Assembly: GCA_964270895.1 (NCBI GenBank)
Contig: OZ185439.1
Source: Podarcis filfolensis
Lineage: Eukaryota
Length of the DNA stretch: 64,000 bases
Reading direction: 5' to 3' (one strand)
Of the stretch, positions 1-40,966 are shown piece by piece. A program made the position numbers and the translations under genes. The notes beneath the pieces are model-generated. The model ran no database searches. It was not told where the DNA came from and saw nothing but the letters and a program-made list of their open reading frames with translations. How positions within the stretch are numbered: the first letter of the stretch is position 1; every line of letters starts with the position of its first letter.

Positions 1-692
1 CTTTGGCATCACTGCTTCAGTCCAAGCACATGAAATCACTGATCAACAACTGCTATCCATGATGGAGGAGAGGAGAGGATAGCTTCTACCTTCAATAATC
101 TCATTAGTGAACAGCAATGACAGATATGTGAACTCATGTGACCGCAATCCTGAATGCTCACTAGTGTTAATACACCATACCAGGTCAATTCCTGGAGGTA
201 AACTACACCCTGTGGTTTTAATGAGGTTTATGACCCGACAGAGAATCTTTCCCTTGGTGCATAATTTTGTCATTATGCGTATGTGTTCATGTTCACTTCC
301 AAATCTTTTTGCATGGACAGGGAACCTTCTGGTGATGGATCAAGAATCTCCATCTTATGTTTGGGTCAGTTGTAAGCAATGCTCATCCCTTGCTCCAAGT
401 GAACAAGAGCACAATCCCACCCAAATTGCCTGGGATTTTGGGGAGGGGGAGAGTGTTGTTGGTGCCTCCCCCTTTTTTTTCTTTTAACTGTTAGTTTGGG
501 ATTTCTGGCTTACTGTAGATGCCAGTTTCTTCATGAGATCTGTGCCCAAAGACATTTGGCTTGCTAGCTTGGCTCTGCCATGCCTTCCATCCTGCCAATG
601 CTTGGCCTTTCTGCTTTCTCTCCTTCCACATATAACACTCAAAGTATCTGGCATTCATCTGTCACTGGGGACTTGTTTTTGCCACATTGTGT

Positions 693-694
<2 letters not shown>

Positions 695-728
<34 letters not shown>
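695..728. repeat. (AC)17 microsatellite; reads (UG)17 on the minus-strand transcript
   Basis: Uninterrupted AC dinucleotide run read directly. Confidence 0.95.
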
Positions 729-730
<2 letters not shown>

Positions 731-758
731 CCCTGCCAATGTTGCTAAACAGACCTAC

Positions 759-948
759 CTCTTCTCCTGGTGCTATTGCCATGGTATTTCTCCATATGGA
801 ATGATTCCATTTGCTTGCCAAACTCACTGGGCTGGGGGCTTGAAGTTTCTCAAGCTCTGATACCTTCCAGATCTTTTGGAAACAACATGCTATCTTTGCT
901 GTGCTGCATTCAAGAAACCCGCCACCATATTTGTTTCCTTTTAAGGCA
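759..948 (-). CDS. Candidate coding exon 3 of an unidentified minus-strand gene (S|ALKGNKYGGGFLECSTAKIACCFQKIWKVSELEKLQAPSPVSLASKWNHSIWRNTMAIAPGEE)
   Basis: Pyrimidine-rich acceptor ctttccttatattctttgctcacag| and donor GAG|gtaggt. The 190-nt exon (1 nt + 63 codons) is open in exactly the phase left by the upstream exon. No homolog recognised. Confidence 0.55.
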
Positions 949-1478
949 CTGTGAGCAAAGAATATAAGGAAAGTGCTGATTGCTGAACATGATATTCAAA
1001 TTAGAGAAAGTAACAAATATAAGCTTGAAGGGCCAGTTAGATCCTGTGGCTTAGAATGAAAGATTCTTCCTACACAACAATGCACAAGTAACATTGCAAA
1101 TAACAGTCACATCCTTGCTATATATGTGCCCCAAACAATTCATCCACTGGACGAATCCTTCCTGCAAAACTAAAGGGTCACCATGGAAAAGCAGAGTCAG
1201 GAATTCTTACAGTAACCATTGTCATGTCTTTGTGTCTTGGTTGTCACTACGGTTGCATTTTTTATTTTTGCCACCAGCTTCTGTCCTGTACTTTGACCAC
1301 AGCTTAATGTGCAGACATTGGCAGGTGATCATGCATATCAGGGTGCTCTAAGATGCTTCTCCTTCCTTTTCCTGCATATCAAGTTGCTATCATATCTGCA
1401 CAGGAGCAGGCCAGGCTGCTTTTTCTGGCTAGTTGGCATTGCTAGTATCCACTTTTAATTGTTATTTCCTTTTGTTTC

Positions 1479-1480
<2 letters not shown>

Positions 1481-1526
<46 letters not shown>
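1481..1526. repeat. (TG)23 microsatellite; reads (CA)23 on the minus-strand transcript
   Basis: Uninterrupted TG run read directly. Confidence 0.95.
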
Positions 1527-1528
<2 letters not shown>

Positions 1529-1669
1529 CTAGCTAGCTTTCCCAACTTAGCTGTACTGGATAGACTTTCCCCAACAAATAAATTGCAGACACAGCCTAAC
1601 TTGCTAAATCCTTCACTCTCTCCATATCCCAAGCCATCTGGATGTGATCTACAGCAGTGGTTTCAGCAC

Positions 1670-1860
1670 CTGGCTATTACAGCGATAGGGCTGTAGAAAT
1701 AGTTTAGATAACTCCACTGTTGCAATCTCCGAAGTATTAGAGACGGTGAGGGCATTCTGCTTTCTGCACAATTATCTGTAGTGATAACATCACCAAGCCT
1801 CTCCTGAAAGTAGAGATATTCTCTGGGCACTGGCAAAAGCTCTGCAATGGTTCTATCCAT
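1670..1860 (-). CDS. Candidate first coding exon (exon 2, 1864-1670) of an unidentified minus-strand gene (MDRTIAELLPVPREYLYFQERLGDVITTDNCAESRMPSPSLILRRLQQWSYLNYFYSPIAVIA)
   Basis: Acceptor tttttgtttaacag| at 1865/1864. ATG at 1860-1858 in strong Kozak context (aatATGg). 63 open codons + 2 nt, then donor CAG|gtgctg at 1670/1669. The other two frames contain stops. Confidence 0.55.
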
Positions 1861-2809
1861 ATTCCTGTTAAACAAAAAGTCCCGCTGATTTTAATGTGGC
1901 TGGACAATGCCTTTTGCTTTTAATGCTGTAACAAAGAAGGTGTTCAAGTCCTCCCTTTTGGAAGATAATCCCATAAGTGGATAAGTAATGCTGCCATTTG
2001 TGCCTTATTTGTACCTTAAATTGGCAGGAAGCAGTGATAGCAGCATAATATGAAACCCAGAGGAATGTAACATCAGCAAACAATACCCAGATGTTCACAA
2101 GCTAACACTGCATAACCCAAGTACATTTATGGAATGTGCACCAGCAAAATAACGCTTACACCACCACTATCCTATGCATTTTGATTATGAGGCAAATTCA
2201 GCTGTGTCCAATTGATTTTAAGCCCTTGCATGGTTACAAACCCTTGCACACCTCCTGAGAAGTTCTATTGAACTCAGTAGGACTGCTTGCCTATGTTGTG
2301 AGTGAGAACCTAGTCAGACCTATATATCAAAGAGGCCCAATGTGCTGTGAATGTGCTTTGAGCACACTTTGAAATGTGTGTGTGATTGCAGCACAGCAGG
2401 CAGTTGGACTTGCATGTGGATAGAGTGGCCAAGTGCCATACTATAACATGGACAGTCCTCTAATAAGTCTGATTTAAAGAGAAAAGAACGATTAAGAAAG
2501 GAGAGCAGGGCCTTTGGGAGTCAACAGGCTGCAGACTGAGCAAGCACAAAGAGATCACCAGTCTTCTCCAATGGTGGCGAGTTGCCTTTCTACTTAATTT
2601 ATAATATTTGTTACTAAACTGGCAGGTAGGCTTAATATCAATTAGCATATGCAAATTCCAGGGCCCTCCTTTGGGGGAGAGGGGCGATGCCTAAATGGTC
2701 ACTGTATGTATGTGAGAGAAGATCTGGCTGGTCGCTACAATTCTGTGATTCTATGACTGGGCAGAGGAGAAAGGTTGGTGGGAACTACATCTTCTCTGAT
2801 CCTGAGGAT

Positions 2810-3300
2810 GATGCGGGGCTGAGGGGGATGCGGCCCTCTCGCAGGCACCGCCCTCGCTTGACTGGGACTTGGTGGGACCCAAGTTCTTTTACCCTTCTGG
2901 TGAAATAAGCACCCGCAGGAAGCTTCTTCTTCGCTGCGTGTCGCTAAGGAGTGGGCAGAGGCCTAGGCCTTCCTTATTGCGCAGATCTGAAGGAAGAGCG
3001 GGAGAGCTGCGCCGCTTCCTCGCTTGCCGGGAGCTCCATGCAAAGGAAATGATTGACCTGGCCGGCCCTTCGTTGAAGGCGGGGAGACAACAACAACTCC
3101 CCCACTTCCCCGCTCCTTGGCCTTCCTTTTCCCGCGACGCGACGGCGGCGGCGACGGGCGTCCCTGGAGAGAAGGCGGCGGCGCAGCAGCTTCCTCCCTC
3201 CTTCAGCGCCCAGAACTGAGGGGATGGATGGCGGCCCACACCTCCTCCTCCGCAGAAACGGCAGTCTTGCAAGCTCCACGTTAAATGTGAAGGGCTAAAG
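2810..3300 (-). promoter_or_regulatory. CpG island; candidate promoter and non-coding first exon of the minus-strand gene
   Basis: Dense CpG/GC-rich stretch (e.g. cccgcgacgcgacggcggcggcgacgggcg) in otherwise CpG-poor DNA. Minus-strand donor AGG|gtaaaa at 2893/2892. Confidence 0.6.
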
Positions 3301-3339
3301 GGCTTTAACCCCGGACTAACATTTCTTTTAATAAATATA

Positions 3340-3439
3340 TTGGTTTTTTTAACCAATTATGTACGACTTTAAATTTTGGTCTATCTATCTATCTATCAAC
3401 CTAAATTTAAAGTCGTACATAATTGGTTAAAAAAACCAA
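3340..3439. repeat. Perfect 37-bp inverted repeat with a 26-nt (ATCT)n-containing spacer
   Basis: 3340-3376 ttggtttttttaaccaattatgtacgactttaaattt is the exact reverse complement of 3403-3439. Confidence 0.95.
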
Positions 3440-3791
3440 AGAAACGGAAAAGAGACATTATTCTTGCGATGTGACAAAAGTATACTTCAGGGCCACACAA
3501 GTGCCATATCGCGTTTATTTGTCTGTGCATTGTGTGTGTGGGGGGGGTGTACAATAATATTGTAACAATATCAAAAAAAATTCTGGCTGTCACACAGCAG
3601 CGGTGGCAGCTGAGGTCCAGTGAGAGCACGTATTTTTAATTTGTAATGCTGCGGGGCCTCTTAAACTTGGCATAGTTTTAGGGCCTCAGCATGTCTTAAT
3701 TCATGCTGAGAAGTGAGAAGGAATACAGATGTGAGCGAGCAGATGTGCCCTCCAAAAGATGATACAGGGGTGTGCATCTAGTAATCCAGTA

Positions 3792-4006
3792 CAGTGGTAC
3801 CTCAGGTTACAGACGCTTCAGGTTACAGACTCCGCTAACCCAGAAATAATACCTTGGGTTAAGAACTTTGCTTCAGGATGAGAACAGAAATCGTGCGGCG
3901 GCAGCAGGAGGCCCCATTAGCTAAAGTGGTGCTTCAGGTTAAGAACAGTTTCAGGTTAAGAACGGACCTCCGGAATGAATTAAGTACGTAACCAGAGGTA
4001 CCACTG
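3792..4006 (+). mobile_element. Tc1/mariner (Tigger/pogo-like) MITE, 215 bp
   Basis: TIRs cagtggtacctc...gaggtaccactg flanked by TA on both sides. Same family recurs at 17407, 48470 and 50263. Confidence 0.9.
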
Positions 4007-4564
4007 TAGTACCTTTTTACTCTTTCAAAGGTACACCCCAGTCATAACCATATTATACTGAGATAGGTCCCATTGAAATGAATTGAGCTTGGTTTCAAAT
4101 AGAATTGGTGGTGTTATGTGTATTCTTCGCAGAATGTAGTCCAGCACACATTTTCTAGGGAAGTCCCCACTGAACTCAAAATAGACTTCCAAGTAAAAGT
4201 GTGCTTGTTAGTCACTCAACTTCCAGTGAGGAGCTAAGGGCTTAATGTAGGATTGTGCCTTTTTTCAAAGGAAGCTTTGATGTGCAGACATTAGCAGGTG
4301 ATAATGCTTATCTCCACAAAAAGCTTTTTCCTGCTGATTCCTGCATACCAAACTTCTGTTAAAAGCACAGACAAGGGCAGTTGCTTTTTGGCCAGTTGGC
4401 AGCCCTATTTCATTGTCTGCAGCTGACTTTCTTTGAAAATGAACCAGATCCAGAGCTTCTCTGTGCCCTTTAATAGATATTAATTCTTACAAAGGACCAG
4501 TAAAAATGCTGGTATCAGATTATTTTAGTTACTAACCATTTCAGAAGGTTCAGAACTACCTTGG

Positions 4565-5690
4565 GAAGAGCAGTAGGAAGAACCCTGCTGGATCAGGCCA
4601 ATGGCCCATCTAGTCCAGCATCCTGTTTTCATGGTGTCCAACCATATGCCCATAGGAAGCCCACAAGCAGAACATGGCTAGTAGCCATGTTGGCCTCCAA
4701 CTGTCTCGGGAAAACAATGGAGTTGCGCTTCTGGGGTTGAAGTCAAACTGCTGGAGAGTCACAGCGTTGTGACTGCAGAGACCAGTTGCTCAGAACTGCT
4801 GCCTCCCATGTTATTTTTGCTGTATTAGCAGCACCAAAGTGAACTCTGGGGTACAAGTCTGGGCAGTGTGTATAGAGATCCTGTGCTGCCCAAACAACAA
4901 GACTCTCCTCTCAGCCTTGCTGATGTGGTGCAAAGGAAAGCAGAGCAATGCTTTTGGTACCTTGGCTGAAGGATTTGCCAGAAGGAGGCAGACAAGATGC
5001 CATCCATCTTAGGGACTCTGCTCTGTATTTGTGTCAGGGGTCAGCAACCTTTTTCAGCCGTGGGCCGGTCCACTGTCCCTCAGACCTTGTGGGGGGCTGG
5101 ACTATATTTTTTGGGGGGGAGAATGAATTCCTATGCCCCACAAATAACCCAGAGATGCATTTTAAATAAAAGCACACATTCTACTCATGTAAAAACACCA
5201 GACAGGCCCCACAAATAACCCAGAGATGCTTTTAAATAAAAGAACACATTCTACTCATGTAAAAACATGCTGATTCCCGGACCATCTGCAGGCCAGATTT
5301 AGAATGCGATTGGTCCGGATCCGGCCCCTGGGCCTTAGTTTGCCTACCCATGGTGTAGAGTTGACTCCTTTGCCTTTTCTTCTCCTGAAGATACCCCACA
5401 AGGCAGCAGAGGGTTAGGATCAGAGTTTTCCTTCTCCTAGATGGGCTACCTTCCCAGGTTGACAAGCCCCATCTGCCCCTCACTTCCCTCTATGGCACAT
5501 TCAGAAACTGCCTTCTTGACCATTGGACTCACTATTGGTCTTGTCCACTCAATCTGCCGGAGCCTGTCTTCACATGCAAAGGGTTTGAGACCCCTCACCT
5601 GATTTAGTTGGCCAGTTGAAGCTGTTCCCAGGGTGTGGACAAACTACCCCAGAACCCCATACATAGCCACTGATAGCCTTATCCTTGTTT
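4565..5690 (+). mobile_element. CR1-type 3' UTR remnant split by an RTE-type non-autonomous insertion (4688-5663)
   Basis: gaagaaccctgctggatcaggccaatggcccatctagtccagcatcc...catggctagtagcca resumes as tagccactgatagccttatcc; tagcca is duplicated at 4682-4687 and 5664-5669. Family names from recalled squamate consensus. Confidence 0.55.
5035..5352 (+). mobile_element. hAT-type MITE with an internal ~66-bp tandem duplication
   Basis: Begins caggggtcagcaacctttt, ends tttgcctacccatg. The block gccccacaaataacccagagatgc...ctactcatgtaaaaaca occurs twice. Confidence 0.7.
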
Positions 5691-6794
5691 TGCCATGTGT
5701 CCTACTTTACAGAGGTCTGTCTTTTATCTAAAGGGCTGTCAGAGGATAGTTACGGTATCTATTTATCCAGCCCAGTTTAAAGATAGCCCTAAGAAGGAAG
5801 AACAGGAGACTTTAAGTTGCCTATCAACAGTTAGCACTGGGACAGCAAACTGAACAGGCATACAGGTCACCTGGTCAAAGTCTTCTCTACCTTAGTTAGA
5901 TGTATTCTATTTCAATTTAAATTATACTAATTTTCTCTAAATGTGCACCTGTATCTATACGTTTGCATATGCAAATATTATACAAATCTGTGTCCCCTCT
6001 CTCTCATCCTCTTTTTTTGTTGCACTTTCCCTTTCTTGGTCATGTGCAACTTGCCACCCCTGGATTTTGCACTGAAAGCAACATATGGGTTTTGAAATGA
6101 ATTGAATGCATATGAAATGAATAAAAACATTTCTGTTGGAGAGTTATTGTAATGCCTTACTATTTCTGTAGTGCTTTTCATGTATCGAGTCTTGTTTATA
6201 AGAAATATACATTTCTCTGTATTATTGAAAGAACAATTAGCTAGCTAGCTTTTGAGCTAAGAGTGCCTCTCTGTTTCATCTGATCTCACTAAGGTTAGTG
6301 AGGTTGCAATCCTATGCATTTACTGAGAAGTAGAAATGCATAGGACAAACTGCTTTGATTGTCATGTACATCAGTAGGAACCAAAGGGAATGGAATTATC
6401 TGAATAAGCTTTGGAATAAATTTTAGATTATTTATACAGTAAAGATTCACAAAGGCCTTATGAAATCATATAGGAAAAGTCCCCTGGCTACACTCTAAAG
6501 GAAAGTTGAAAAAAAGAGCCTGTGATTGGATGGAAGATTCTTTGAATAGTTGATATGTATGGAGATTTATCCTGCATGTATATACATTGTGCTGCAATGC
6601 AGGTTTATATAGAAGTAAGTGCCACTGAGATCAATGGGACATTCTTCCAAAGTTCATTTTTTTGAGACAAAGAGATGGGGCAAATAAAGGGCATTTCTAA
6701 GGGGACCACACTTAAAGAACACTTTGAGAAATGGAACATGTCCAGAGACAGGTGGACAGAGATGGTGAGAGACCAAGTCCTAAGAGGAGAAGAG

Positions 6795-7113
6795 ACTTCA
6801 AATATTTGAAGGGCTGTCATGTACATGATGAACTCAATTTGTTTCCTGTTATTTGTTTCCTGGGGAGGTAGATCAGATGCAATGGGTTCAAAGTACAAAA
6901 AGTGGTTTTTGATTAAATATGAGGGAGAGCTTCCTGATAGTATGAGCTGTTCAGCTGTGGAACAGACTGCCTCAGAAAGTGGTGGACTCTCCTTTGTCAA
7001 AAGGTTTTAGGCAGAGACTGGATAGCTACCTATCAGGGATGCTGTAGCAACAGATCTCCTATGTCAGCAGGGGATTGAGCTTGTTGATCTTTGAGGTTCC
7101 TTCCAGCTATATG
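6795..7113 (+). mobile_element. CR1 LINE 3' fragment
   Basis: ttcaaatatttgaagggctgtcat...gtggtggactctcc...ggttccttccagctatatg matches the CR1 ORF2 end plus 3' UTR pattern; decayed. Confidence 0.75.
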
Positions 7114-7799
7114 GCTCGTAAGATAACCCCATGCAATATCACATGCAGTCTTACATCCAGTTTATGTGGGACCTGATTGCATTGGAAGTGGTATGAAAAA
7201 TTAAAAACAACAGCAACACACAAATGAAATGGGTATTCCTTGAACTGTGCTATCAAGCAGCTGCCTGAATGTTCAGATTAGCCCTGTTACCTAGTACGTT
7301 TGCATGGGATTGTAACCTTATTAGCTAACCCTGCTCTGGATAAAGCTATGTTTGCATCCAGCCCTTTGCATTCCCCTCTATCATTCCGTTACTCTCAAAG
7401 GATGCTTTTATGATTAAAAACAGCAAGCTTTGGAGAAGGGAGGGGGTGTTATTTACAAGCCTAACAAAAATCAGTGGGCTAAATATTTACAGGAGAAAAT
7501 AGTTTAAAAGGAGCCAGGCTTTCAGAAGTAATTATGATAATGTTCCAAAGAAACAACCCATTCACACCAAGTGGGTGCCTGAGTCACAGCTGGTGCAAGC
7601 TGATAAAGCTCTTGGCTGGGGCCTGTAAATTGTGAATGCCCCCCCATAAGTCCTTCAAGAGATCTTCTCCTCACAGATTCTGGTTGAGAAGAAGATTCTC
7701 TCTAGTTTCTTTGAAATCCCAACATAAAATGTTGCCTCAAAGGAAAAAAAACTCTTTTACTTTTTGAGCAGGTGGGTACAGAAAACAGTCCTTGAATTT

Positions 7800-8030
7800 T
7801 TTTCTTTATTACTTATTCCAAGGCAGCCAACAGCTGTAAAGTGCAAACTACAAAATATTAAGAACATAAAAACAAAGCAGATGAATATACAATAAAAAAC
7901 AATAAAACTGATAAAAAACAGCAGCCAGTTGAACAAATTGCAACCTATTTACAGTAGTCACAAGGAGTCAGAATATCATCAGGCCAAAGGCCCTTCTAAA
8001 TAAATAGGATTTTTGCTTAACCAGCAGAAT
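7800..8030 (-). mobile_element. L2 LINE 3' remnant
   Basis: A-rich tail preceded by tttattt and an aaggcc...aaataaatagg motif typical of reversed L2 3' ends. Confidence 0.4.
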
Positions 8031-8308
8031 TCTCAGAAATTCTCAGCAGAATTTTATCTTACTCTTGTTCTTAGAGGTGATTCTTCTGGAGTTTAATCTT
8101 ATTCATTCCAAAGAATAATTTCCTCAGATTTGTTTATTTAGTCCACAGTGGACCCTCTACACTTCTCAGTTCTTCATCTTCACAATCCAACATGAAGTCA
8201 TTTAAGAAACCAAAAGCAGCCCGTTGACTTGTTGCTGGTGATTGCCAAAGGATCATTTTGTGACAGTTAGAAGTACCGTAATTCTGTGGAAATTGACTTG
8301 ACTGGAAC

Positions 8309-8815
8309 AGCCAAAGTGGTGTAGTGGTTGGAGCATTGAGCTAGGTGTGGAAAGACCCTGATTCAAGTCTCCATATAACCATCAACTACTGCATTGGCCT
8401 GAATATAAGCCTCACTTTTTTTCAAAATTCTGACTGTGAAAAGTTAAAGTGTGGCTTAAATTCGCAACCTTGCAAAAATAGGCTTTTATGATATCACTGC
8501 TGAAACAGACATACGGTAAAACGGAATGGGTGTGAGTGCCTGTGGAATTTTAAGGGAGCAGCTTATATTCGGGTATTGTCTTTTTTTCTCCCCCCCCCCC
8601 TTGAATTTTAAAGGTACGTCTTATATTCAGGTGTGACTTACATTTGGGCCAATACTGTACTTTGAACCAGTCTGCTTTTCAGTCTAACTCACCTTGCAGG
8701 ATTGTTTTGAAGATAAAGTAAGAGTGTGTTGGTGGGAGAACCATGTGTGCAGCCTTGAGTTCCTAGGATAAAAAGTGGAGTTAATAATAATGATAATAAT
8801 AAATTAATAGTAAGT
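8309..8815 (+). mobile_element. tRNA-derived (Squam3/Ther1-type) SINE interrupted by a Tc1/Tigger-like fragment (about 8500-8657)
   Basis: Head agccaaagtggtgtagtggttggagc; body ctaactcaccttgcaggattgttttgaagataaa...gccttgagttcc; (AAT)n tail. The intervening block ends ...aatactg|ta. Confidence 0.55.
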
Positions 8816-9955
8816 GTCCTGTTCTTAGAAATTAATACTGTGTGTTCTAGAATGAGAACAGCTGTCTCTAAAATACAGGAGTTTGGGGGGGGGGTCTGCC
8901 TGAGGGCCTCATTCCATTGTGGAAAAACGTCTCAGGGCCACACGCCAGTGATGGGCGAGGCCAGAGAGGAAGAAAAAATTTTCTCTATCAATGTCATGCA
9001 TACAAATTTTATAAGCTTTTATAATTTCATCTCTTTCTCTCCCTTTTTTATAAACTCCCAAATGCTGCATCTTTTCCTCATGGGAGAGTCCTTGATCTTT
9101 TTTGTTGCCCTTCTCTGGCACTGTTCCAACTTTACGATATGTACTCAATACTCTAAATGAGATTGCGCCATAGATTTTAATAACTACATTATATCAGCAA
9201 TTTTATTTTCAGTTCCTTTCTTAATGATCCCTAGCTTGGAATTTGCTTGTTTCACAGCTGCTGCACAACTGGGTTGATGTCTTCATCAAGCTATCTGCTA
9301 TGAACCCAGGGTCTTGTTCCTGGTCATTTAGCACCAGACCCCATGAACATATATTTGAAATTAAGATTTGTTTGCTCTGACACGCATCACTTTACAGTTG
9401 TTTACACTGAATTGCAGTTGCCATTCCACTTAGTTTGGTGAGGTCCTTTTAGAGCACTTTACAATCTCTTTTTGTTTTAATGCAGGGGTGAAACTAGGCT
9501 TTATTTCACCCAGGTCAAAGACACAGGCTGGGAGACTCTATACCCAGCCCCCCAACTACAGCACTGTTTAACGACCCTGTAGTGTCATCAGCAATCTTCG
9601 CCTCCTCATTGCTCACCTGTTACACTAAGTCATTTATGAACAAGTTAAAAAGCAGAGCCCCTAGTTCTGATCCTTGGGGGACATTACAGTCTACATGTCT
9701 TCATTTGGAGAACTGTCCATTTATTCCTTTTATTTGCTTCCTGCAACTTACCGTAATCAATTTGTGATCAACAACAGAACCTCTCCTCTTCTGGATCACC
9801 TCTATCTATATGCTTGTTGACACTCTAAAATAACTTTACGTTGTCATGAGACAGGACTAGTCCTTGCAGAAGCCATGCAGGCTTTGCTGCAGCAAGGCTT
9901 GTTCTTCTATATGCTTGGTTATTTTATCTTTTTTGGGGAGACATACATTAAGCTA

Positions 9956-10322
9956 GGGACGCAGGTGGCGCTGTGGTCTAAACCACTGAGCCTAGGGCTT
10001 TCCGATCGGAAGGTCAGCAGTTTGGATCCTTGAGACGGGTGAGCTCCCGTTGTTTGGTCTCAGCTCCTGCCCACCTAGCAGTTCGAAAACACATCAAGTG
10101 CAAGTAAATAAATAAATAAATAGGTACCGCTCTGGCAGAAAGGTAAACAGTGTTTTCATGCGCTGCTCTGGTTCACCAGAGGTGGTTTAGTCATGCTGGC
10201 CACATGACCAGGAAGCTGACTGCGGACAAACGCCGGCTCCCTCGGCCTATAGAGCGAGATGAGCGTGCAACCTCAAAGTTGTCTGCGACTGGACCTAATA
10301 ATCAGGGGGTACCTTTACCTTT
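9956..10322 (+). mobile_element. Full-length Sauria SINE inserted in the CR1
   Basis: gggacgcaggtggcgctgtggtctaaaccactgagcc...ggacctaataatcagggggtacctttacc(ttt) tail. Body matches the copy at 49967. Confidence 0.9.
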
Positions 10323-10631
10323 TTATATTGGTTCATTTTTATTTTGTCTAGAATTTTGTCTCTCTTCACCACTATCTGCTTCAGTTTCTCAGACTCTCTT
10401 CCTCCAAAAGTTAATTCAAAAGTTAGTGCTCTGCTCTACATCTTCCACTGTGAAGATAGGTGCACCCTTTCAATTCTATGATTCTATGAAATAATTAATT
10501 TAGCTTCCCCCCTCCCCAATCTCCTTATCCTCCTTTAGCACATTATTGACTCCTTTGTCATCCAAGGGTTCAGCCACCTCCCTAGGTAGTCTGCTGCTAT
10601 TAATGGATGTAAAGACCTACTTGTTGTTCTA

Positions 10632-10632
<1 letters not shown>

Positions 10633-10665
<33 letters not shown>
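10633..10665. repeat. (TG)16 microsatellite
   Basis: Read directly. Confidence 0.95.
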
Positions 10666-10669
<4 letters not shown>

Positions 10670-13600
10670 AACATGCTTCTCCAATTCTTTTTTAGCATAT
10701 ATTATTCTCCACTAATTTTTTTTTGCCAAAGTTTGTGTTCCTTTTTGTTCACTTTCTTTGGACAAGACTTTGATTTTAACTTTTTTTTAAAAAAGAAAGT
10801 TTTTTTGCCTCTGAGAGCTTCTTAACTTTGCTAATCAACCACTTTGGCATCCTCCTGGCCCTTGTGAGACCTTTATTCATCTGCAATGTACAGATTAGGG
10901 CCCGGTTAACCTGTTTGACATTCTAGACCCAGTCAAACTAACCTTAATCATTATTGTCAGAAAAAAGAAATCAACTGTACACCCAGGTACAAACAAGAAC
11001 AGCTGACATGTTAGAACAGTGCCCTCTCAAGAGCAGTGCTGCTGCCACTTACCCAGATGGTGCAGGGAGCAGCAAGGGCATACTGATGGAAGTGCCAGAT
11101 TGCCTCCAATGGTGCACCTAGGCTGCCCTAAGCTCACCACCATCGGGCCCCAACTCCACACCATGGCACTGCCCTATCACATGACTGCTACTGAGTTCAG
11201 ATGTTCTCATCTGTTCTGCAACCTGTTAAGGGACCATCTGAATGGAGCTCATGGACCACTAGTAGTCAAAGGGCTACAGCTTGAGCATCACAGCAGGTAG
11301 GTAGGTAGGTAGGAGCTTGGTAGGTAGGCAAGCTAGGTAGGAGAGCTTGCCTTAGGACTCTTGGGCAGCTATACAGCTATACTTTCTCCCCCGGAGGACA
11401 GCAAGAAAGGGTTGCATCTGTATCAGAGCCAATCTATTACCTTCCATCATCAGTTCAAAACAAGAAAGAAAGCACAACTCAGGAAGAAGTGGAAAAATGC
11501 CTTGATCATCAGTGATTCCTGAGTCACACGCATTTCAACTTAAATTCTTGGTAGGGGTTCCTTTTCTGCCTGGAAGATGAATACTTTCTCTTTTTCAGTG
11601 CATTCTGCCAACATAGGCAGAATCTGCTCCAAATTATGTACCTCTTCTTCACTGCGAACCACTTACATCCATATTCAGCAAGCTCTCTGTTGGTTGCTGT
11701 TGAAGACCCAGGCTGCCATGTTTTCCCCAATATCCTCACCTTCCTAGCTTTCTGTCCTCATAGAAGTATCCCTCTTTTGACAAAACGTTGGCATAATTTG
11801 AAATAGTACATTTGAAATAGCTGAGTCCCTGTCAAGAGTAAGCCAAATAAGCTCTTACTACTACAGTACAGCTATGACCCTCACCTTACCCTGGATGTGC
11901 CCACTTGACTGCTTCAATCTGCAGAAGTGGCACTTCTACAAGGGCTGCAAAATATTTGTTCCACTCTTGTGAGAAATTGATTTGTTTTTACTGTGACATC
12001 AGCTGATCTATAGATATTAGGTAGGCATCTTTGCTGTTCTGTTTTTGACTACTGCTAAAAACTTTTCTGTTTCGGCAAACCTTCCCTGACATCTAATTTG
12101 AATAGGTGCATTTATTTTTCAGTTTCAATTAGATCCATTTCCCCCCAATTGATTTATCTCTATTTTGATCATTATGTTTACTGTTTCAAAGTCTGATTTT
12201 ATTACAGTGTTAATGAATACTATATGTAAGCCACTTACAGATTATTATTATTTGATTAAGTGGTATATAAATCTTGTTAAGGAAATAAAATAAATACCAC
12301 CTGATCATTACACATAATAGTCCCTTTCATTCCACTGTGCATCAGTGTCAGCAGAGCTGATGGCCACAAAAAAGAGATACCCCTTTTTCTATGGTATCTT
12401 TTGCTCTGTGATGCCGAGCCATGAGCTTCTTTGTGTTACCTATCTCCTAGTTTGTTGCATCCTGAGCAAGGCTGTTGTCAGGCAAAGCAGCATCAAAGCT
12501 TTGCCAGGAAGGTCTGCTAGCGTGGAGGGTTCCTCTTATTCCGTTGGAGCCTTGGGAACCAGGTTCCATGCAAAGGTTTTCTCCAACTCCAGTACAAACA
12601 CACACAAATACACACCAACTGCTGCAGTTAATTTAAATTTCCTTCCCTGAAGAGGCCAGTGCAAGGCTGGGTTCTCTGAGATTCTGCATGATCTGACACC
12701 ACATCTCAGCCTGGCCCTGCCCTCCTCCCCCTTCACCCGGCCTGGCTTTCATACAACGAAGAAAAGAAATAGGGGAAGACACTTTCCCCCCAACATTCTC
12801 TATTTATCTTAAATGAGGCAAAAAGGGCTTCATCAGTCTGTTTGAAACAATATCTGAAGCAGAGCTGGGCTGTGAGGGAGCGTCACTTCATCAAAGGCTG
12901 GGCTGGATACTGCACTGGGGAAGAAGCCCACAGGCCTGGTGGTTACTTTAAGTTTATAATGTGCAGGATTTACTTACATCATCTGCTTTCTGTAAATCTG
13001 CCCCCCCCAAAGCAACACTCTGCTCCAGCCTCACCCAGTCATGTCTGAGCACCCAATTCCAGAGTCTCTGAATTAACTTGTACCTCACAGTAAGGCTAGA
13101 CTGGGGTGAAGGGGGAAATCTATGGTGGGAAATTATAATCAGACAAACTTGCAATTTCAGGGACAAATCGTGTAATCATATTGGGCACGATTCCAGCAAA
13201 GCTAAGCACTTTGAAGGTTCATTTATTTCAACATGAGAGATCTAATAATGCACTTGAGACTGCAATCCCATACATACTTACCTAGGAGGAAGTCCAGCTG
13301 AATTCAGTGAGCCTTACTTCTGAGTAGACATGTCTAGGGTTGCACTGTGGCTGTTCTAAATGTTGACTAGATCTAGATCGTGTCTTTCATTTTGTAAATC
13401 AGTTTGCTTAGAACTTGGATTTCTTGAAGTCAGGCCCATACCTCACAAGGTAAGAGAGTATGATGGGATGGAGTAATTGTACTTACTTTCCTTAGTTCAT
13501 CATAATACATGCTTCATCTCAGTCAATAATCTTAAGTGAAAAGCCTGTTTAAAAACAACCCCCCATGTGCTGCTTTTAGGCAATATTTTAACATAAGTAG

Positions 13601-16600
13601 TGCGGTAAAAATCAGAAATACATGATTTCCATACTTGCTTAAAAAAAGAGAAAAGACTGCAATCATTAGCAAATTTGAGGAAATAAGCCCCATTCAGTTG
13701 AAACTTTCTCAATAGGCATGTTTATAGGATTGAGCTGCAAAAGTGTGTGATCCATGGAGCCCAACTAGGAAGTAAATATCAAGAGCTCGATAGGACTCCT
13801 ATTAAATATGCTTATTTTGAAGTAAGCAGGCATATAACTGGGGTATGTATATTTTTCCTGAAAATTTAAAGGGCTCTGAAATCAGTGGTGTATAGTTCCA
13901 AGCAGATAGCTACCTTTAGGATCAGACTATAATACACCAGCCTCATTTATTTTAGTAGGACTTCTTTAGGTGAATGTGTTTAGAGTGTGTATAGGAAGCA
14001 AAAGGAGAGGCATTCAGGATCTACCTTATGCCTCTTGGGGGAAGGGAGAAAGGAGGACTGTACAAATGTTAATCTGCATCCAAGAATTGTCATAAACCCA
14101 TCAAATAATTGTAAATCTTGGGCACGATCCACTGAAAATAAAGCATTGTTTTGAGTCCCTTGGGAGAAAATTGCATACCCCCATATAAATAAATGGGACG
14201 CAAAAGTGCTTTGCTTTGGCTGGATCATGCCCCAAGGTTTCAGCAGATTCAATCCAATCCACTGTTTTGTTTTTGTTTGAACCCAGCAACTCAACAGAGA
14301 GAGAACATATTGGAGGCATTTTAATTAATATAATCGTTCAGGGCATGTAAAATTACACCAAAATAGCTGGTAGAAAATAACAATTGACAGTTTCAGTCAA
14401 GAGCTAATGACAGGTTTACTATGCATTAATCACAACGATGATGACGTGCACATTAATGATGATGAGGGTGATAATCATAAATAAAACGTTTTGTACCCTA
14501 AAATCCTGTGCCATTCCTTGCTGGATTGATTCCTATAGGCCACGGGTGGAGGGTGAGGAGATAGTGGGGTCTCCCGACGTGGTGCGGGAAGCAGAAAGAG
14601 TGGTAAGATAGAAAGCCCCGCCGCGCTCCTCTTCGCCAAGCTGCTTTTCCTTTAGTTAAAACAAGAAAGGGGGAAAAAGAGAAGACGTGGGCCTCTGGCG
14701 CTTAGTGGTGGGCATCCTTTCCACAAGAGAAAGAACTGCGGAAAACTGCTCATTCCTTAACCTATTTAAGCCATTTCTATCCGGCCTTTCCCTCGCAAGC
14801 CTTTCAAAGCGTCTTACAAGCCAGAAAGAAGGGCAAAATCCAAAACGGGGGCAAATCCAAAACAAGGGCAAAGAAATTAAACGAATCAGTCAATCTTTCT
14901 AGCTTTCAGATTTATGTTTTACAAGACTTTCGATGGGGTGCGGGGAGGAGAATCCCGAGATCTTTACCTGGAGGATTTAGGTTGCAGTAAGAACCCCGCT
15001 GCCCTATGGGATTCAGTGGGACTTAATTCTGCGTGGACATGGTTAGGATGGCGCTGCTAGTGGGTTTCCGAATTCTACAGTGGGACCCTGGGAAGAGACT
15101 AGAACGGCCAGATCAAAATAGATAAGGTGGAAAAGGTAATCTGCATAACAAATAAGGGATTCCCCACCCCATCCCCCAAGCAGAAACTCCCTCCGTTACG
15201 CAGCTAAATCCCAGCTACGCGGGATTTTCAAAATCCTTGCAACATAACCGATGATTTGCAGTAACATTGCTATTGAATGAATGAAGGGAGTACAAACGAA
15301 ATCCCACTTGCTTTGGGGAACGAGCCCGGCAGTGGGAATTCCCGGGGAGGTTGTAAGACTCCCTCGACGCCACTGCACTGGGTGGAGGAAGCCGGTTTCA
15401 AGCGCCTTGCCATCCCTCCTTCCCCTTTGAGTCTCTGGGCCGCTTGTCAGCGGGTAACGTAGTCGGTGCCGTCGGGGATCGGGCGCTGTTTTGCGGATGG
15501 AGGAGCCAAGGAGACCCGAGAGAGCATTTGTTTGGGGACGTGTCTCCCTCACCCAGTTTGCTCTGCCATCGGAGTGGGGAGAAGCCCACAAGTTCCCGTC
15601 GGGGTTCCAAGGGCGACTCGGCTGTCGCCGCCCCCGCGGACCCGTCTTCAGGTCTTCCTGCACACCTTGACCCTTCCACGTCTCTACAACCCCCTTCCCC
15701 AGTTTCAAGGCGGATTGTGTGGCTGAATGTGTGATGCGCTGGCTCAGCCGAAGTGATGCCTCCATCCCACTCCCTCCACACAGCACCCGAATTCAGCACC
15801 CGAATTCAAGCAGGGAATTCAAGTTGCTTCTCGGGGAACTCTGCCGGCTGGATTCCGGCAGCGGATCAGCCACTTCTTCCCGTCCCTTTCTGGAGCCATT
15901 GGCTAAAAATGCTCTTCGACGGAGCATCCAAAGTCTGCGAAAGGCGCTTTTGAAGGACACCAGCTCCTCCGGTTCGCTCTACCAGCGGCAAATGACCGGG
16001 AGGTTCCGTCTGAGTCCCAGGAGGTGTCTTCGGGTTCCCATCCCCGTCGCTCTCAGGCTTGGGCCCCCCGATGGCTTACCGTGTCCCCCTTGCTCGGCTT
16101 CCCCAGGCCCGTGGTTCTCTGTCCTGCATGACTTTTCCCCGCAATATCCGCCGGCAAGTTTTTGCGCGCCCTCCTCCAATTCGAAGCGTGAAATCGGGCC
16201 GTCGGATTCGAGGCGCGCGTTAATTGTTTCTGCTCAGCGGTACGCCTGATTCTCTCTGCAAAGTCAATCCCGTTGGAAATGGGATTTCATGCTGTTTTCC
16301 TGGCCCGGTAATTGATCTCCCGAGCGCTGCTAAGTGGAGAGATTTCGGACAAATCGAGCTGTCTAAAATTGCTAAAGTCGATTCGATTTGAGTCCCACGA
16401 GGGTCTCTGCAGCGGAAGGGGGGTGGGCAGACGGGAGAAGGGGCAAGAGACCTATAGAGTTTGGGTCAAACTCCGGTATTTCGCCCCCCCCCACACCCAA
16501 ACTCTCGTTCAGTTTCCCAAGATTCCCCCCTAAAAACCCGACGGTATAGGCAACATGGCCAAGTTAACGGAGGGAGCGGTAGGTGAGGGTTAGAAAAGAC

Positions 16601-17648: not shown

Positions 17649-18129
17649 TATTTCTGTCCAGGATGCCCAAATTACTTGGCTGGCCTGGCTGTACGTGTGT
17701 GCTATTTTGCTGTTTGGCGTAGGGCAGCGAGATGTCTTCTTGCGCCGTCCTTGTGAACAGAGATATCAAGAGATGGCGCTTCCTGGAACCGAGCAAGGAA
17801 TCACCTGGGCTTACCCAGCGAAGCCAGGCACCTGCTCTTTGGGGATTTTCTTTTTCGACCAATCTAAATTGCGCCCCCCCCGCCTTTTAAAAATGTCGCT
17901 GGCCAAGGCCAGAGTGGTTAGAACAGCATTGTTTGACGGGTCTTCCCTTCCCTTCCCAGCCCTGCAGAAGGGGCGCTCCGAAGGATGCACCGGAATGCTA
18001 AGTATTCCAAGTTTATGCCCTAAATGGCAACGCATCGGGCTTTCGCCCGCCAGGAGGCGCTCGTTGAACATCATCAAGCTCTTGGTTGCCGTCTGTTTGG
18101 CCTTCCGAAAGCCAGAGGCTCCGTGCAGT

Positions 18130-18143
18130 GCGCCCCCTGCCGG
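18130..18143 (-). promoter_or_regulatory. CTCF core motif
   Basis: Minus strand CCGGCAGGGGGCGC fits the CCRSYAGRKGGCRS core at all 14 positions and lies in the CpG-retaining domain. Binding not shown. Confidence 0.5.
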
Positions 18144-21100
18144 CTACTTCTCTTGGCAACGTCTGCTTTCGGCGAGGATTCCATTAAGGATGGATGGGGC
18201 GAGGGCACCGCTGCGGGTGCGACAAAGGGGGGCATTTGGGAGAAAGAACTTCGCTCCTTGCTATCCTTTCGCTTCACCTCGAACAATGGCTGAGGAGATT
18301 CAGCTTAGATACATCAGCCTGCCCGCTGGCTTGCTGCCCAGTCCCACACCCTCCCTCTGGGGATTTTGCCTGACTATAAACTCGGTGGAAATGCCCTTAT
18401 GCGGGATCTCATGATTCCAGCGAGGGATTAGGCTGGGAATTCAGGATTCTGCTTTCCAGGGTTTTCCTGGAGACTCCAGCCTCATTTGCAAAGCAGCCAA
18501 CGTCAGCACTTCGTCCCTCTGCTAAACATCTGTCCATGCGAAAATACGTTTTCAAAAAACAAAACAAAACCCAGGTTTCCAGACACCCACTCCACCCTCG
18601 ATATTTATGTCTGCAACATCTCATTTGGAAATGCCATCGACTCAGTTTGCAACATCCCATTATAGGGGGTTAAATCCCGACTTCCCAATTTGCAGTTTAT
18701 TATTATTTTTATATATTCCTCTACTTAGAGGTTTTGGCCTTGGAGCATGTGTTACCAGTTAGAGAAATATCAAAATAATGAATGACAAATTCCGAATTCT
18801 GAGGCCATGAATCACAAACTGGAGAGTCCAGACTGAGTAAACGGGGGCCATGGAGATTCCTCACGGATCACCCAAGCAAATACATTTCATTTAGGAATTA
18901 TAAGACTTCAATCCTATACCCGCCTGCCCATTGAGCTCAATGGGACTTCAGATTAGATACGTCTAGACTAGCATTGCACTGTAATTATTCCCCCTCCCGT
19001 AACAGTGTCATAAAAATGGATAGGAGAGACTTTGTTCATCCTCAAGCTGTTCAAAAGCACCCCGTTAACTCCGTTCCTCATGAAAAGCAAAAAATGAATT
19101 TAAAAAGATCAAACAAACAAAACCCTAGGAAAGCACCTAAAAATCATGACACGAAGGGAGCACGAATTTTTCTGGATTCCCCAGCTGGATAAAATATAGG
19201 AAGCCAAGACTGGTCAGGCATGAACGGTGAATTCACCAGGAGCTTTTTAAAAACAAAAAAATATGTATTCATTAATGGCCTGAAAAAGGAAGTAAGAATG
19301 TGACAAGATTTGCAGGTTATCAGGTCATTTAAAGCAGCTAAAGCAGCTAAATCTAAAGCAGACTGAGGCGGTGGTCTTATCTGGTACCTGGAAGTAAGTC
19401 CCGTTGACATCAGTGGTGCTTACTTCTGAGTAGACACGCGTGGGCTTGCACTGCAAAGACCAGTCGCCCTCGGTGCTAAGGAACGCAAGCAACGAAACAG
19501 CAGATGGGATTTAATACTACTTGGGAGGAGAGATGGCCAAAGAACATAATAAAATCTAAAAATGAAGGCAAGGCGTCGTTGATTTCAGTAGGTTTTACAC
19601 AAGGTCTTGAGGGCTCGGGAAGCAATTGCGCTTATGCAGAGCCAGCTTCATACACCCTGTGAGTATTTCATCCAGCATTTCATCCCAGTGCTAAAAAAAA
19701 TCATATTGTTTTTCTTCCTGTGGAAAATGTGCTTAGGATCGCAGTCCCCTCCACTGTGTTGGGAGGTAAGTGGAACGCAGCGCCTGGCGCACCTTTGTTC
19801 CCCAACAAGTGTAATGGGAACCTGACTGAGGTGGCAGATGAGAGCCCCGCTGAAAACAGTGGCACTTCCTTCTGAATAAACACGCGGCCACAATCGCCCC
19901 TTGAAACCACAACAGCCAGGAGCCACCATTCTGGGAAGATTCGTCGAAATGTCGGTCCAAGAGACTGTAGCTCCGCAGCCAAAAGAATAAACATCACGTT
20001 AGACTTCCGAGCGCCGGGTAGTGCGTTAAGTCTACTGCAGCGGAAACAACAAAGAGCCCTGTCCTTTCCTTGAAGAGGACAAGACTTGAGAGTGGCATTT
20101 GCTTTCCTGCGCGTCACTTCGTCGGATGCGCGACGGCCGGGTTATCTAATGTACAATGGGTCTTTCTTAGTGCAGAAGAGCAAAGGGGCCGTTGAAAAGA
20201 AGTTCACCTTCATACCATTACGCCCCGAGCCCTGAATAGTATATTTCTGCTCTCCCAGTTGATTTTAAGGCGGTAAAGAGAAGCTCAATCAGAATTATTT
20301 GGTCACAAGCAAAGATTTAAACACTTCGTCTTTGAAAAAAAGAATAGAACAAAGGAAGGATGTGTCTGAACCGCACAAAACCAGGAATACCTGAAAAGAA
20401 ACTGCCCCATTTATACCCGAAGGCATCAAGCTTGAAACAGATCTGATCTTTGCTTCTCGCAAGGCCCAGTTTTAGCCTATGGAAACGTAAGATATTAGGC
20501 ACCCCTTGCCTTAAACATTAGAGTCTCTCAAGGGAAGGTTTGCTGATAATTCCTATGTTAAATGTATGTATTTATATTACAGGGCATCAGGCTTACACGA
20601 CGTAAAACAGTGGTTCAGGCTGCGTACAGGCCATATATTAAAAACCCATTCTGCAAGAGTCCTGGGGATCCTGTAGTTTATCCCCACCCCACCCACAGAG
20701 CTACAGTTCCCAGCACCCTTGGCAAACTACACTTCGCATGGTTCTTTAAAAGAGAGTTTCCCAGGTGAGCCGTGCCTTGAAAGGAACCACTTTTTAATTT
20801 TTCTTTGGGTCTGATGCCCTTTAATATGAATATATGCGTAGCATTTCTGATATTGCTTACATTTACAGAGGCCAGCCGTGATGGGAATACCCCCCTCCTC
20901 TCACCGCCCCCTCCTTTGAAAGCGCTTCCTGGCGCATCTGGCTCTGGACACTGTCAAAGACAGGCTACTGGGCTCGAGGACCCCCTCAGGCTACTGTTGT
21001 GAATTTGGAAAGTTCTTCAGTAGTGTCAACTTGAGCATAAATACTCGTGAACGAGGAGAGGAAATTGTCCATGTCCACCGTTATTTTCTTGCAAACCAAG

Positions 21101-23199
21101 GGCCCAGCCTAATTCCACCCCCCTCCACCGCCCCAAGATCTAATCTATTTCTCCGGTAGTCTTTTGTCAGCGCCAGGACTAAGTTCTTCCATCTTCGTGA
21201 TTCCAAACAGCAGTTTTACGCAGCACCTCTACCATCGCAGCACCTCTTTCAAAGCTCAAAGCCGTTTCCCCCAACCCCAAGTACAACTGGGCATCTCCGA
21301 AGGCAGAGTTGCACCCACAGCTCGCACATCCCGAGAGCATGTTCGCACAAGCAGGACTTGGATCATTTGGAGACATTCTGATTTCATGAGAAGGTCGCTC
21401 TCCTGAGATCAAGGACAAGTTGTAGATCAGTTGATATTTCTGCGGTGGGATAAAGGCGATACAAAAACTGCGCGCGGATTTGCTCAAAAGCCTTATGGGG
21501 CCGCGATCTTACACACACTTACTTGGGAGTGTAAGCCTCAAGGGGCACACTTCCAAATTAGAAGGCGCAGAATCCGGCACGGCTGGGGTGAGATCCGAAA
21601 CTCCCGGAGATTTCATTCACAACCAGCGAGTCTTACGACTTAAATAAAAACCTTCTGCAGTGTAAAAGAACAACAACAACTATTATCTCCAGCGTGCGCA
21701 CACAACGGCAGTGCTCCTAGGGAAACTTGTTTTCGAACACCGGGAAAGTGCAAAGAGCCAGTTGGACACACCATCTGGGAGCTCTTCGCATACCAAGGAA
21801 ACCCAGAGGAGGACTGAGGCTAACCCTCCCCTATAAATGTTTAAAACTAGGCTTGGAGATCGCTCGGTCTCCATAGCAGGGCTCCAATCTATCGAGGTCC
21901 GCAAGGCTGACTACAGAAGAAATGTGACGGACTTCACCGAGAAACAGCAACTCCCGGGAGGCAATAAATCGAGCCGGTCTCCTTGCCAAACCGACCTGGC
22001 CTTTTGCACTCCCACTAAGACAACTGAAGAGTTGGAGGGCGGATGGGCTGTGTGTGTTTGTGTTCTGCATCCCTTTTGTTTTACCCGGGTTTTCCTTTCC
22101 AGGAAAGGAACGAGACTCAGACATAAAAAAGGATTGCATTGCTTAAATGGGTTACTCTGCTTAAAATATATATTCCCGCACTCTGGGACTAAGCAGTTCC
22201 AAGCCGGGACAAATCCTGTGGCGCGCGGTCCCGGGCGACCGGGATCAGCTCTTGGCCAATGCTCGAGCAATATGCATTTCTTTGGCAGTAAAGTCGCCCT
22301 TTCTGGACTCGGTTTCCACCGCAGCGCGAAGCACGAGATCGCAGTCCTGCAACCTCTGGCACGTTTACTCGCAAGTCACTTCCGCGGCGTTGAACTGGGG
22401 GCTTTCACGCAGAAACAGGGCGCGAAAACAACCCAAGTGAAGACGCCGCGCGTAGTTTGACAGAGAGAGGGGAGAGAAAGACCCTTCAGTCAAATAGGGG
22501 TTACAGCTGGATTAATAAATGGCCCTGTGACACCCCCTCTCTCTTAGGCCCCCACCCCGCAAATGCAAAAAAACTCCGATTCAAAGGGAAGCACCTCCCG
22601 CCTGCCCTCTGGCTCATCCCTAAGCAAACGGATGGAGAACCTGTCTCTCTCCCTCCCACAGTCCCTCGCCCATTAGCCCTGGCCAGCGTGTCTAGCGGTA
22701 AGGAGCGGCGGGAGTTGGAGACCTACAACATGTGGGTCTCCGGTCCGTTGCGGGGTGGGTGGGGGAGATTCCCTTGGCCGGGGTAAGGCCCCTCCACCGA
22801 AAACGTAGCAGAAGGGAGAGAGATCTCTTCTCCCGTCGGGGAGATGCCGCGTTACCCATAGATGAAAACCATCCTCCCGGGAACGACTCACCCGCGCTGC
22901 GTCCGGGCTCGGATTCTTTTCCCTTTTTCTCCTCCCGGGAGCGCCGGGACTTCCTCCTTTCGTCCACGCCAGTCTCAGCACCGAAGGCAAAGGCTGGCAG
23001 TGGGGTAGGGTGGGGTGTTGGTGGAGCTGCAGGGCACCCCTGCTCCCCTCCAGCCCCCAGATTTTTGACTGTCCAGAGCCAAAGGCCGGCGGAAAAGATT
23101 GTGTGAACGGAGAGACAGACCCCTGCTTACCTACCCATCTCTTGGGCTACTCTTGCGCGAGGTTTCCGCGTCGGGGCTGGGGAGAGACGAGGCAACGAC

Positions 23200-23734
23200 G
23201 GTCAGGGGGTTCCCATTATTCGCCTCCGGTTGGGCTGCTCTTGCCAAGCCACCTTTTTGTAGCGAGACTGTTAGCAACGGCGGCGGCGGGAGGCCTCTTA
23301 CCCGGCAGTTGGAGAGAAGGAAGCCCGGTGCGCGCGCGGAGGGGGGGAGGCCAATCCCCTCCCCATCTCCCCCTTCCCCCTCCCTCCGGATGCGCGCAAG
23401 CCCCCTCCGGGAGCCGGCCTGGCCCCTCGGGGAACCCGTGCCGAGAGGGTTAACCCCGGAGCGACTCCCCTTTACCTTTGCGAGAGCGAAAATGTCCGCA
23501 GGCGGCGGCTCTTCCAGGGGCGGCGCTGGCGAACAAGGCGTCTTGGCACCGGCCCCGGGGAAGGCTGGTCAGGGGCGTGAGCTCCCCTCTCCCACCAGCA
23601 CCAAAACATTGGGGGGCAGGGGAAAAAAGGCAGCTTCGCCCCCACGCTTTGCACTCCGGACAATTAGCCGCCCGCGACTGGCTGTGCCCGGCGCGGGACT
23701 TAATTCGGGGAGCCCCCCTCGGCCTCGGCCCAGC
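23200..23734 (+). promoter_or_regulatory. HPSE2: HPSE2 promoter / 5' UTR region
   Basis: GC-rich island core immediately 5' of the ATG. CCAAT at 23351-23355, RFX-like gttagcaac at 23270-23278, and a C-run tract at 23356-23387 that could form a minus-strand G-quadruplex. TSS not determinable. Confidence 0.65.
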
Positions 23735-23994
23735 ATGCCCTGCCCCAGCGCTGGCCCTCCCGGCTTCCTGGCCCTCTTGGCCCCTGGACTAGCGCTGCTG
23801 GCTCACCTCTCGCTCCCCTCGCAGGCCGGGGTGAGGCGCCTTCCCGCCGGGACTGGCCCGCAGGGCGCCCCGGGCCGGACGCTCATCCTCCTGGACGTGA
23901 GCGCCAGGAGCCCCCTCCGCGTCACCAGCGAGAACTTCCTCTCGCTGCAGCTGGATCCCTCCATCCTCCACGACGGCTGGCTGGACTTCCTCAG
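23735..23994 (+). CDS. HPSE2: Heparanase 2 coding exon 1 (signal peptide + start of the glycoside hydrolase family 79-like domain)
   Basis: MPCPSAGPPGFLALLAPGLALLAHLSLPSQAG...TLILLDVSARSPLRVTSENFLSLQLDPSILHDGWLDFL aligns without gaps to human HPSE2 from its second Met, as recalled. 260 nt, phase 2, donor AG|gtaagg. Confidence 0.97.
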
Positions 23995-24900: not shown

Positions 24901-25058
24901 CTCCCGGCGTCTGGTGACCCTGGCCCGTGGCCTGGCGCCCGCCTTCCTCCGCTTCGCCGGCAAGAGGACAGACTTCTTGCAGTTCCAGAACGTGAAGAAC
25001 CCGGCCAAGAGCCGAGGCGGACCCGGACCCGACTACTACCTCAAGAACTACGAGGACG
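24901..25058 (+). CDS. HPSE2: Heparanase 2 exon 2
   Basis: Acceptor cttgtccgcgcag|. SRRLVTLARGLAPAFLRFAGKRTDFLQFQNVKNPAKSRGGPGPDYYLKNYED. 158 nt, donor G|gtgagg, phases 2 to 1. Confidence 0.97.
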
Positions 25059-40788: not shown

Positions 40789-40966
40789 AGAGTCATGAGA
40801 TGCTGAGGAAGATTGACTGGAAGGAAGCACAGACCTGTAAGGGGCAGGTGGGAATGCATTGCCCATCAGGCAAGTTTGTCTGGTTTCAACTTAAGGAGTA
40901 GAGACTTTTGCTAAGGACTGAAAGCTGTGAGTTTTTTGTTGAGCCTTTTGTTCTTTTATACCACAG

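Follow-up and report, generated by a model that had tools for sequence, protein, structure and literature searches.

A spliced, probably non-coding transcript on the strand opposite HPSE2 in the genome of the lizard Podarcis filfolensis

Does the minus strand upstream of HPSE2 carry an unnamed protein-coding gene in Podarcis filfolensis, or a spliced RNA across which a reading frame stays open by chance? The question was raised by a window of 64,000 nucleotides, which contains no N and of which positions 1-3600 were read on the minus strand. Near its left edge the original prediction had placed a multi-exon gene with a first exon in a CpG island, a second exon with the start codon and a third exon from which the open frame leaves the window. 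The proposed first exon ends in a minus-strand donor at 2893 (AGG/GTAAAA). The proposed start-codon exon (1864-1670, minus strand, 195 nt) follows an acceptor that reads ...TTTAACAG, begins with GAAT at 1864 and ends at the donor CCAG/GTGCTG at 1670; its ATG (1860-1858) is preceded by 4 nt of the exon and has an A at -3 and a G at +4. The third exon (948-759, minus strand, 190 nt) follows the acceptor TTTGCTCACAG, begins with TGCC at 948 and ends at the donor GAG/GTAGGT at 759. When the model was rebuilt by script, exons 1864-1670 and 948-759 joined 2-to-2 into a frame of 127 codons without a stop, which is open at 759. Each of the two exons has a single open frame out of three, and the sole in-frame ATG of exon 948-759 lies 9 codons before the exon end. 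Splice sites, ATG context, phase, frame and CpG island were thus all found in the letters as they had been described. Comparison of repeats within the window revealed that the sequence of the proposed exons is unique. A transposon or repeat origin of these exons was rejected, since only microsatellites and a short similarity between 1304-1438 and 4277-4401 recur within the window.

The transcript was searched for in sequencing runs. Three related organisms contributed eight runs that are probably RNA, each containing 5-13% of the words of positions 700-3300; their assignment as RNA is a guess. Four runs were compared, as contigs, with positions 1-6000. The contigs, which come from unspecified tissue, drop rare isoforms and carry no strand information. 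The flat contig depths were summed per 200-nt bin and served as the basis of the depth arithmetic given below. Two runs of one closely related organism (organism B), here called X2 and X3, contained exon 948-759. In X2, a contig of 1372 nt with a depth of 7.57 (record 9) matched 759-949 with its positions 1130-1320 and matched nowhere adjacent. Of its other letters, 1129 continue past 759, outside the window on the left, and 52 continue upstream of 949. In X3, a contig of 188 nt with a depth of 9.4 (record 18) matched 762-949. Just outside the contig borders, the dinucleotides agree with GT-AG splicing if read on the minus strand, but not if read on the plus strand. These results demonstrated that exon 948-759 is a real internal spliced exon of a low-abundance RNA, that this RNA is at least 1.37 kb long and that the exon had been predicted to the base. 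The same contigs, with their canonical minus-strand borders, confirmed that a spliced and so far unnamed RNA is transcribed in the orientation opposite to that of HPSE2.

The next exon had been expected beyond the left edge, and the 1129 letters of record 9 downstream of 759 indeed found no place on 1-758. This stretch is an intron of the minus-strand transcript that runs out of the window without a further exon of record 9. It was covered by low-depth unspliced pieces only, for example 488-645 in X3 with a depth of 2.4. An alternative ending of the protein through a weak acceptor at 329/328 had also been considered. The depth of X2 was 0 over 201-600, and the acceptor at 328 had zero coverage and was not used.

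Upstream of exon 948-759 the RNA departed from the proposed exon chain. The sole contig that crosses the upstream junction does not contain exon 1864-1670. In X2, one unspliced contig of depth 2.7 was all that covered this exon; it spans 1590-1815, reads across the donor at 1670 for 80 nt and ends 49 nt short of the acceptor at 1864. The depth of 2.7 in bin 1601-1800 was wholly accounted for by this contig, whereas the 52 upstream letters of record 9, if placed at 1670-1721, would have raised it to about 4.7; that position was ruled out by this arithmetic. In X3, depth was zero over 1601-2000, although exon 948-759 had a depth of 9.4 in this run. The 52 letters were not located at 2893-2944 either, because bins 2801-3000 and 3001-3200 were zero in all four runs, and this site was likewise rejected. 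Neither exon 1864-1670 nor an exon ending at 2893 is the partner of exon 948-759 in these runs, and a splice junction from the start-codon exon to exon 948-759 was found in none of the four. An isoform that includes exon 1864-1670 may occur in testis or embryo, as four runs were surveyed and these through contigs only. Both X2 and X3 showed a small coverage straddling 2600 with an equal lower-to-upper ratio. About 54 nt at about 2577-2630 would fit the numbers at a depth of 7.57 and were discarded as the upstream exon for want of a canonical donor. The GT-AG-bounded interval 2665-2548 fits the ratio of X2 to X3, yet it cannot be the direct partner of exon 948-759.

The small CpG island from which the transcript had been thought to originate spans about 450 bp (about 2850-3300), with a GC content of 0.58-0.67 and an observed/expected CpG ratio of 0.78-0.94, and is a candidate promoter of the minus-strand transcript. 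Sliding windows over 2801-3300 gave a GC content of 0.58-0.67 and an observed/expected ratio of 0.63-0.94. RNA depth was zero in all four runs over 2801-3200, which includes the donor at 2893, and the proposed island exon was therefore left without RNA coverage; GC-rich 5' ends are often missing from assemblies. Low-depth unspliced pieces were scattered over 1-2800, where 24 of 56 bin-by-run cells were non-zero, whereas in the unique bins to the right of these positions (2801-3200, 4201-4400 and 5801-6000) this applied to 1 of 16 cells (Fisher p 0.007, the cells not being independent of each other). Such an asymmetry would plausibly result if the primary transcript began close to the island's left edge and extended leftwards from there. 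Because the low-level unspliced coverage lies only to the left of the island, we infer a start at or near 2850-3300. The island itself is thus real and the coverage pattern is consistent with a start nearby, whereas the exon ending at 2893 did not appear in the RNA.

HPSE2 is located on the plus strand and has its own CpG island of 3 kb (22.2-25.3 kb). The coding part of its exon 1 (23735-23994, plus strand) begins with the ATG at 23735 inside this island. Exon 2 (about 24899-25057, plus strand) was recognised by its frame, which matches heparanase 8 kDa subunit chains of the PDB (E 1e-5), and exon 3 is located at 40966-41127 on the plus strand. Two further CpG islands (15.2-16.3 kb and 17.9-18.4 kb) lie between the locus and HPSE2. 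The description of the transcript as divergent from HPSE2 holds for its orientation, but the ATG of HPSE2 is about 20 kb away, in its own large island and with two islands in between. A partner in a bidirectional promoter would start on the other strand less than about 1 kb from the start of HPSE2; exon 948-759 is about 23 kb away and the coverage points to a start at about 2800-3300. The transcript does not seem to be a classical bidirectional-promoter partner of HPSE2, with the reservation that its upstream 52 letters could lie beyond 6000.

The open frame was compared with chance expectation. At least one open frame was found in 19% of random 190-nt pieces of the window and in 10% of dinucleotide shuffles of exon 948-759. 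In shuffles of the 1.9 kb between 949 and 2893, an in-phase partner running from an ATG to a GT over at least 60 codons was found in 44% with loose and in 10% with strict splice filters; as a control, 7 of 58 real pieces of the window gave such a partner under the strict filters, the acceptor filter of which is just missed by exon 1864-1670 itself. A frame of 127 codons is thus within what one would expect to find by searching 2 kb with care.

Comparison with organism B gave few differences over the exons. In exon 948-759, 1 of 191 positions differed (802, T>C), which changes His to Arg in the proposed frame. One difference was found among the 226 positions of the piece 1590-1815, and 7 among the 327 positions of two intronic pieces. 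Exon 948-759 alone did not differ significantly from the introns (p 0.27), whereas exon 948-759 taken together with the piece 1590-1815 did so slightly (2/417 versus 7/327, p 0.048). These numbers may be taken at most as a hint of constraint at the nucleotide level, and they are silent on the reading frame. A ratio of dN to dS is not computable from one change.

The two halves of the 127-residue peptide were examined apart and not as one joined piece. The 63-residue peptide of exon 948-759 had no relative among 1.84 billion representative proteins, in a library that holds one protein per 50% cluster and in which a fusion to a conserved protein could be hidden. The single library match listed (P0001, 3667 residues, E 1.8e-10, 0 stretches) was dismissed as spurious, as BLASTP gave no alignment. 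Searches of Pfam (E<=1) and of the PDB (E<=10) were equally empty for this peptide. Its Atlas recognition of 1345 and best feature score of 0.71 were both within the range of shuffled sequences, and the AlphaFold2 model had a mean pLDDT of 51.9 and a pTM of 0.22. The peptide of exon 1864-1670 likewise had no match in Pfam or in the PDB at these thresholds, and no protein sharing words with its open reading frame was found. Its Atlas recognition of 2304 lies right at the threshold attained by 91 of 100 proteins from known families. The best Atlas score of this peptide (0.85) was to bacterial hypothetical proteins and is a lead at most by the calibration of the tool. The AlphaFold2 model of this half was all helical (pLDDT 63.1, pTM 0.27). 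The absence of relatives and of a confident fold is weak evidence, because true orphan proteins would give the same result in these searches. Taken with the start-codon exon missing from the transcript and a frame at chance level, these data do not bear out the 127-residue protein that had been proposed.

A faint likeness of the peptide to the beta5/G5/alpha5 region of small GTPases had been pointed out. The short string FLECSTAK recalls the G5 motif ..E[CT]SAK of the Ras superfamily and nothing else does. By eye, the peptide reads NKYG where NKxD is expected, and NKYG is located about 8 residues before the SAK-like string, whereas about 30 residues separate the two in GTPases. There was no match to the Ras-family profile, GTPase chains, though plentiful in the PDB, gave no match at the thresholds given above, and helices were modelled where the beta5 strand is due. 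The likeness was rejected as chance.

In mammals, the position of the left neighbour is held by CNNM1, in the same orientation as the transcript described here. The peptide had been said not to resemble CNNM1, and this agrees with the Pfam search, which detected neither the transmembrane (DUF21) domain nor the CBS-pair domains of CNNM proteins in either exon peptide, nor any other family. Coding exons of CNNM1 are thereby excluded here; an untranslated leader exon of CNNM1 would be compatible with this result.

We consider exon 948-759 most likely to be non-coding and to belong to a multi-exon transcript of RNA polymerase II, probably an intergenic long non-coding RNA, and give this interpretation about an even chance of being correct. 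Transcription would start at or near the small island at 2850-3300. On the minus strand, transcription would proceed away from HPSE2 and toward the next gene on the left. Exon 948-759 would be internal to this RNA, and the other 1129 nt to which it is spliced in the contig come from sequence past the left edge of the window. The 127-codon frame would be a chance assembly of one real and one unsupported exon and not a protein. A long non-coding RNA is a processed RNA of more than 200 nt, and a contig of 1372 nt with a canonically spliced exon was found. It also lacks a functional or conserved open reading frame, and the part of the contig inside the window is without relative, family or confident fold, while 1129 nt lie outside. 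The transcript resembles intergenic long non-coding RNAs from orphan CpG islands in its several exons, canonical splicing, low abundance, lack of a conserved open reading frame in the part inside the window, position between two protein-coding genes and likely start beside a small CpG island. It differs from them in that its start, polyadenylation site and full exon chain were not seen.

A coding region in the 1129 downstream nucleotides would turn the exon into a leader exon, and this possibility has to be kept alongside the long non-coding RNA. The coding gene on the left would then use exon 948-759 as an untranslated leader, transcribed from an alternative upstream CpG-island promoter, a reading that we regard as rather unlikely but as the second most probable. 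The orientation of the transcript is that expected of the left neighbour from mammalian synteny, 1129 nt of the contig continue beyond the window, and exon 948-759 is without a usable in-frame ATG. Alternative promoters are, moreover, commonly located at orphan CpG islands that lie upstream of genes. No library protein carries the exon 948-759 peptide as an N-terminal extension, but this is expected if the exon is untranslated. The transcript shares with alternative leader exons its orientation, the missing start codon and the onward splicing outside the window, and differs from them in that no link to any coding exon was observed. Far less probable is the coding model itself, a lineage-restricted gene whose product (MDRTIAELL...) would run from exon 1864-1670 through 948-759. 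All of its sequence features are present, one of its exons was predicted to the base, and exon regions differed slightly less from organism B than introns did. Against this very unlikely model stand the start-codon exon, which was not joined to 948-759 in the junction-crossing contig and was absent or unspliced in the expressing runs, the lack of relatives, family and confident fold, a frame that chance explains, and the sole substitution in exon 948-759, which is non-synonymous. De novo and orphan coding genes also have short open frames without relatives in lineage-specific spliced transcripts, but here the start-codon exon lies outside the observed transcript and there was no sign of translation or of frame constraint. 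With another start exon, and with the frame continuing to the left of the window, exon 948-759 could be a coding exon of a squamate-restricted orphan protein, to which we assign a low probability. In that case the original prediction would have been right on the lineage-restricted gene and wrong on its first coding exon.

Exon 948-759 could also circularise. An (AC)n microsatellite (695-729) is located in the intron just downstream of the exon and a (TG)n microsatellite (1481-1526) in the intron upstream of it, and the two are 100% complementary over 35 nt. Their pairing would promote back-splicing into a circular RNA of 190 nt beside the linear form, and the exon-only contig of X3 (762-949) looks as if it came from a graph branching at both exon ends. 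We hold this for improbable. Dinucleotide repeats are everywhere, with more copies at about 10.6, 28.0 and 63.3 kb, a contig limited to the exon can equally result from alternative linear junctions, or else from thin coverage, and no back-splice joint was among those listed for the contigs. The most sceptical reading, by which there is no transcript and the contigs stem from chimeric assembly or from a locus arranged differently in organism B, draws on the guessed run type and on the missing strand information. It is extremely improbable, as both ends of the matching piece lie exactly on the canonical AG and GT pair of one strand and the piece was seen in two runs with a depth above that of the surrounding pieces.

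The long non-coding RNA favoured here has mainly annotation value: in this lizard genome, the interval from HPSE2 to the next gene on the left would gain one spliced and probably non-coding transcript, an unannotated example of a very common kind. As an alternative leader of the neighbouring gene the exon would mark an upstream promoter, and if the frame were translated it would belong to a young orphan gene. The locus illustrates that splice sites read from letters alone can place a real exon to the base, and that joining such exons into an open frame does not show that a protein is made. A search of 1-12000 with Rfam at gathering scores gave no known structured RNA. High depths and many joints over 3600-5600 reflected abundant repeat families that are unrelated to the transcript.

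Each of the introns flanking the confirmed exon (948-759, minus strand) was found to carry one dinucleotide tract, and the resulting (AC)n and (TG)n pair, at positions 695-729 and 1481-1526, respectively, is perfectly complementary. Complementary tracts arranged in this way on either side of an exon can favour back-splicing.

At positions 2641-2656, the minus strand carries a pair of octamer-type motifs, ATTTGCATATGCTAAT, which in this orientation lies approximately 200 nt downstream from the left edge of the small CpG island (2850-3300). It may represent an enhancer or promoter element, or a chance occurrence. Within the surrounding region (2401-2800), X2 and X3, two of the four probable RNA runs from related organisms, showed small coverage on both sides of position 2600 with an identical lower-to-upper ratio; in the run X1, coverage (depth 23.9) was confined to 2601-2800. 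This coverage marks either a candidate exon or a repeat fragment.

The CpG island is directly bordered by an inverted repeat (3340-3439), the 41 nt of which are 98% complementary around a (GATA)n-like loop of 18 nt. This repeat was covered at low depth (2.5-5) in all four RNA runs, and the coverage probably derives from further copies of a MITE-like element. In each of the runs, contig depths added up to between 1e3 and 5e5 over three stretches (3790-4008, 4584-4800, and 5035-5400), which have abrupt shared ends at 3790, 4008, 4584, and 5035 and are rich in variant letters. They are transcribed members of very abundant repeat families, SINE- or TE-like. A 70-nt tandem duplication lies within 5135-5267.

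Two further CpG islands (15200-16300 and 17900-18400), situated between the exon and the promoter island of HPSE2 (22200-25300), contain long GC-rich open frames without an obvious gene; these islands could serve as alternative promoters of HPSE2, or other upstream transcripts could begin there. The reading frame used by HPSE2 exon 1 (23069-23995) runs without a stop through more than 200 codons ahead of the predicted start ATG at 23735, which is preceded by two in-frame ATGs. This open stretch upstream of the putative start is probably GC-rich leader sequence.
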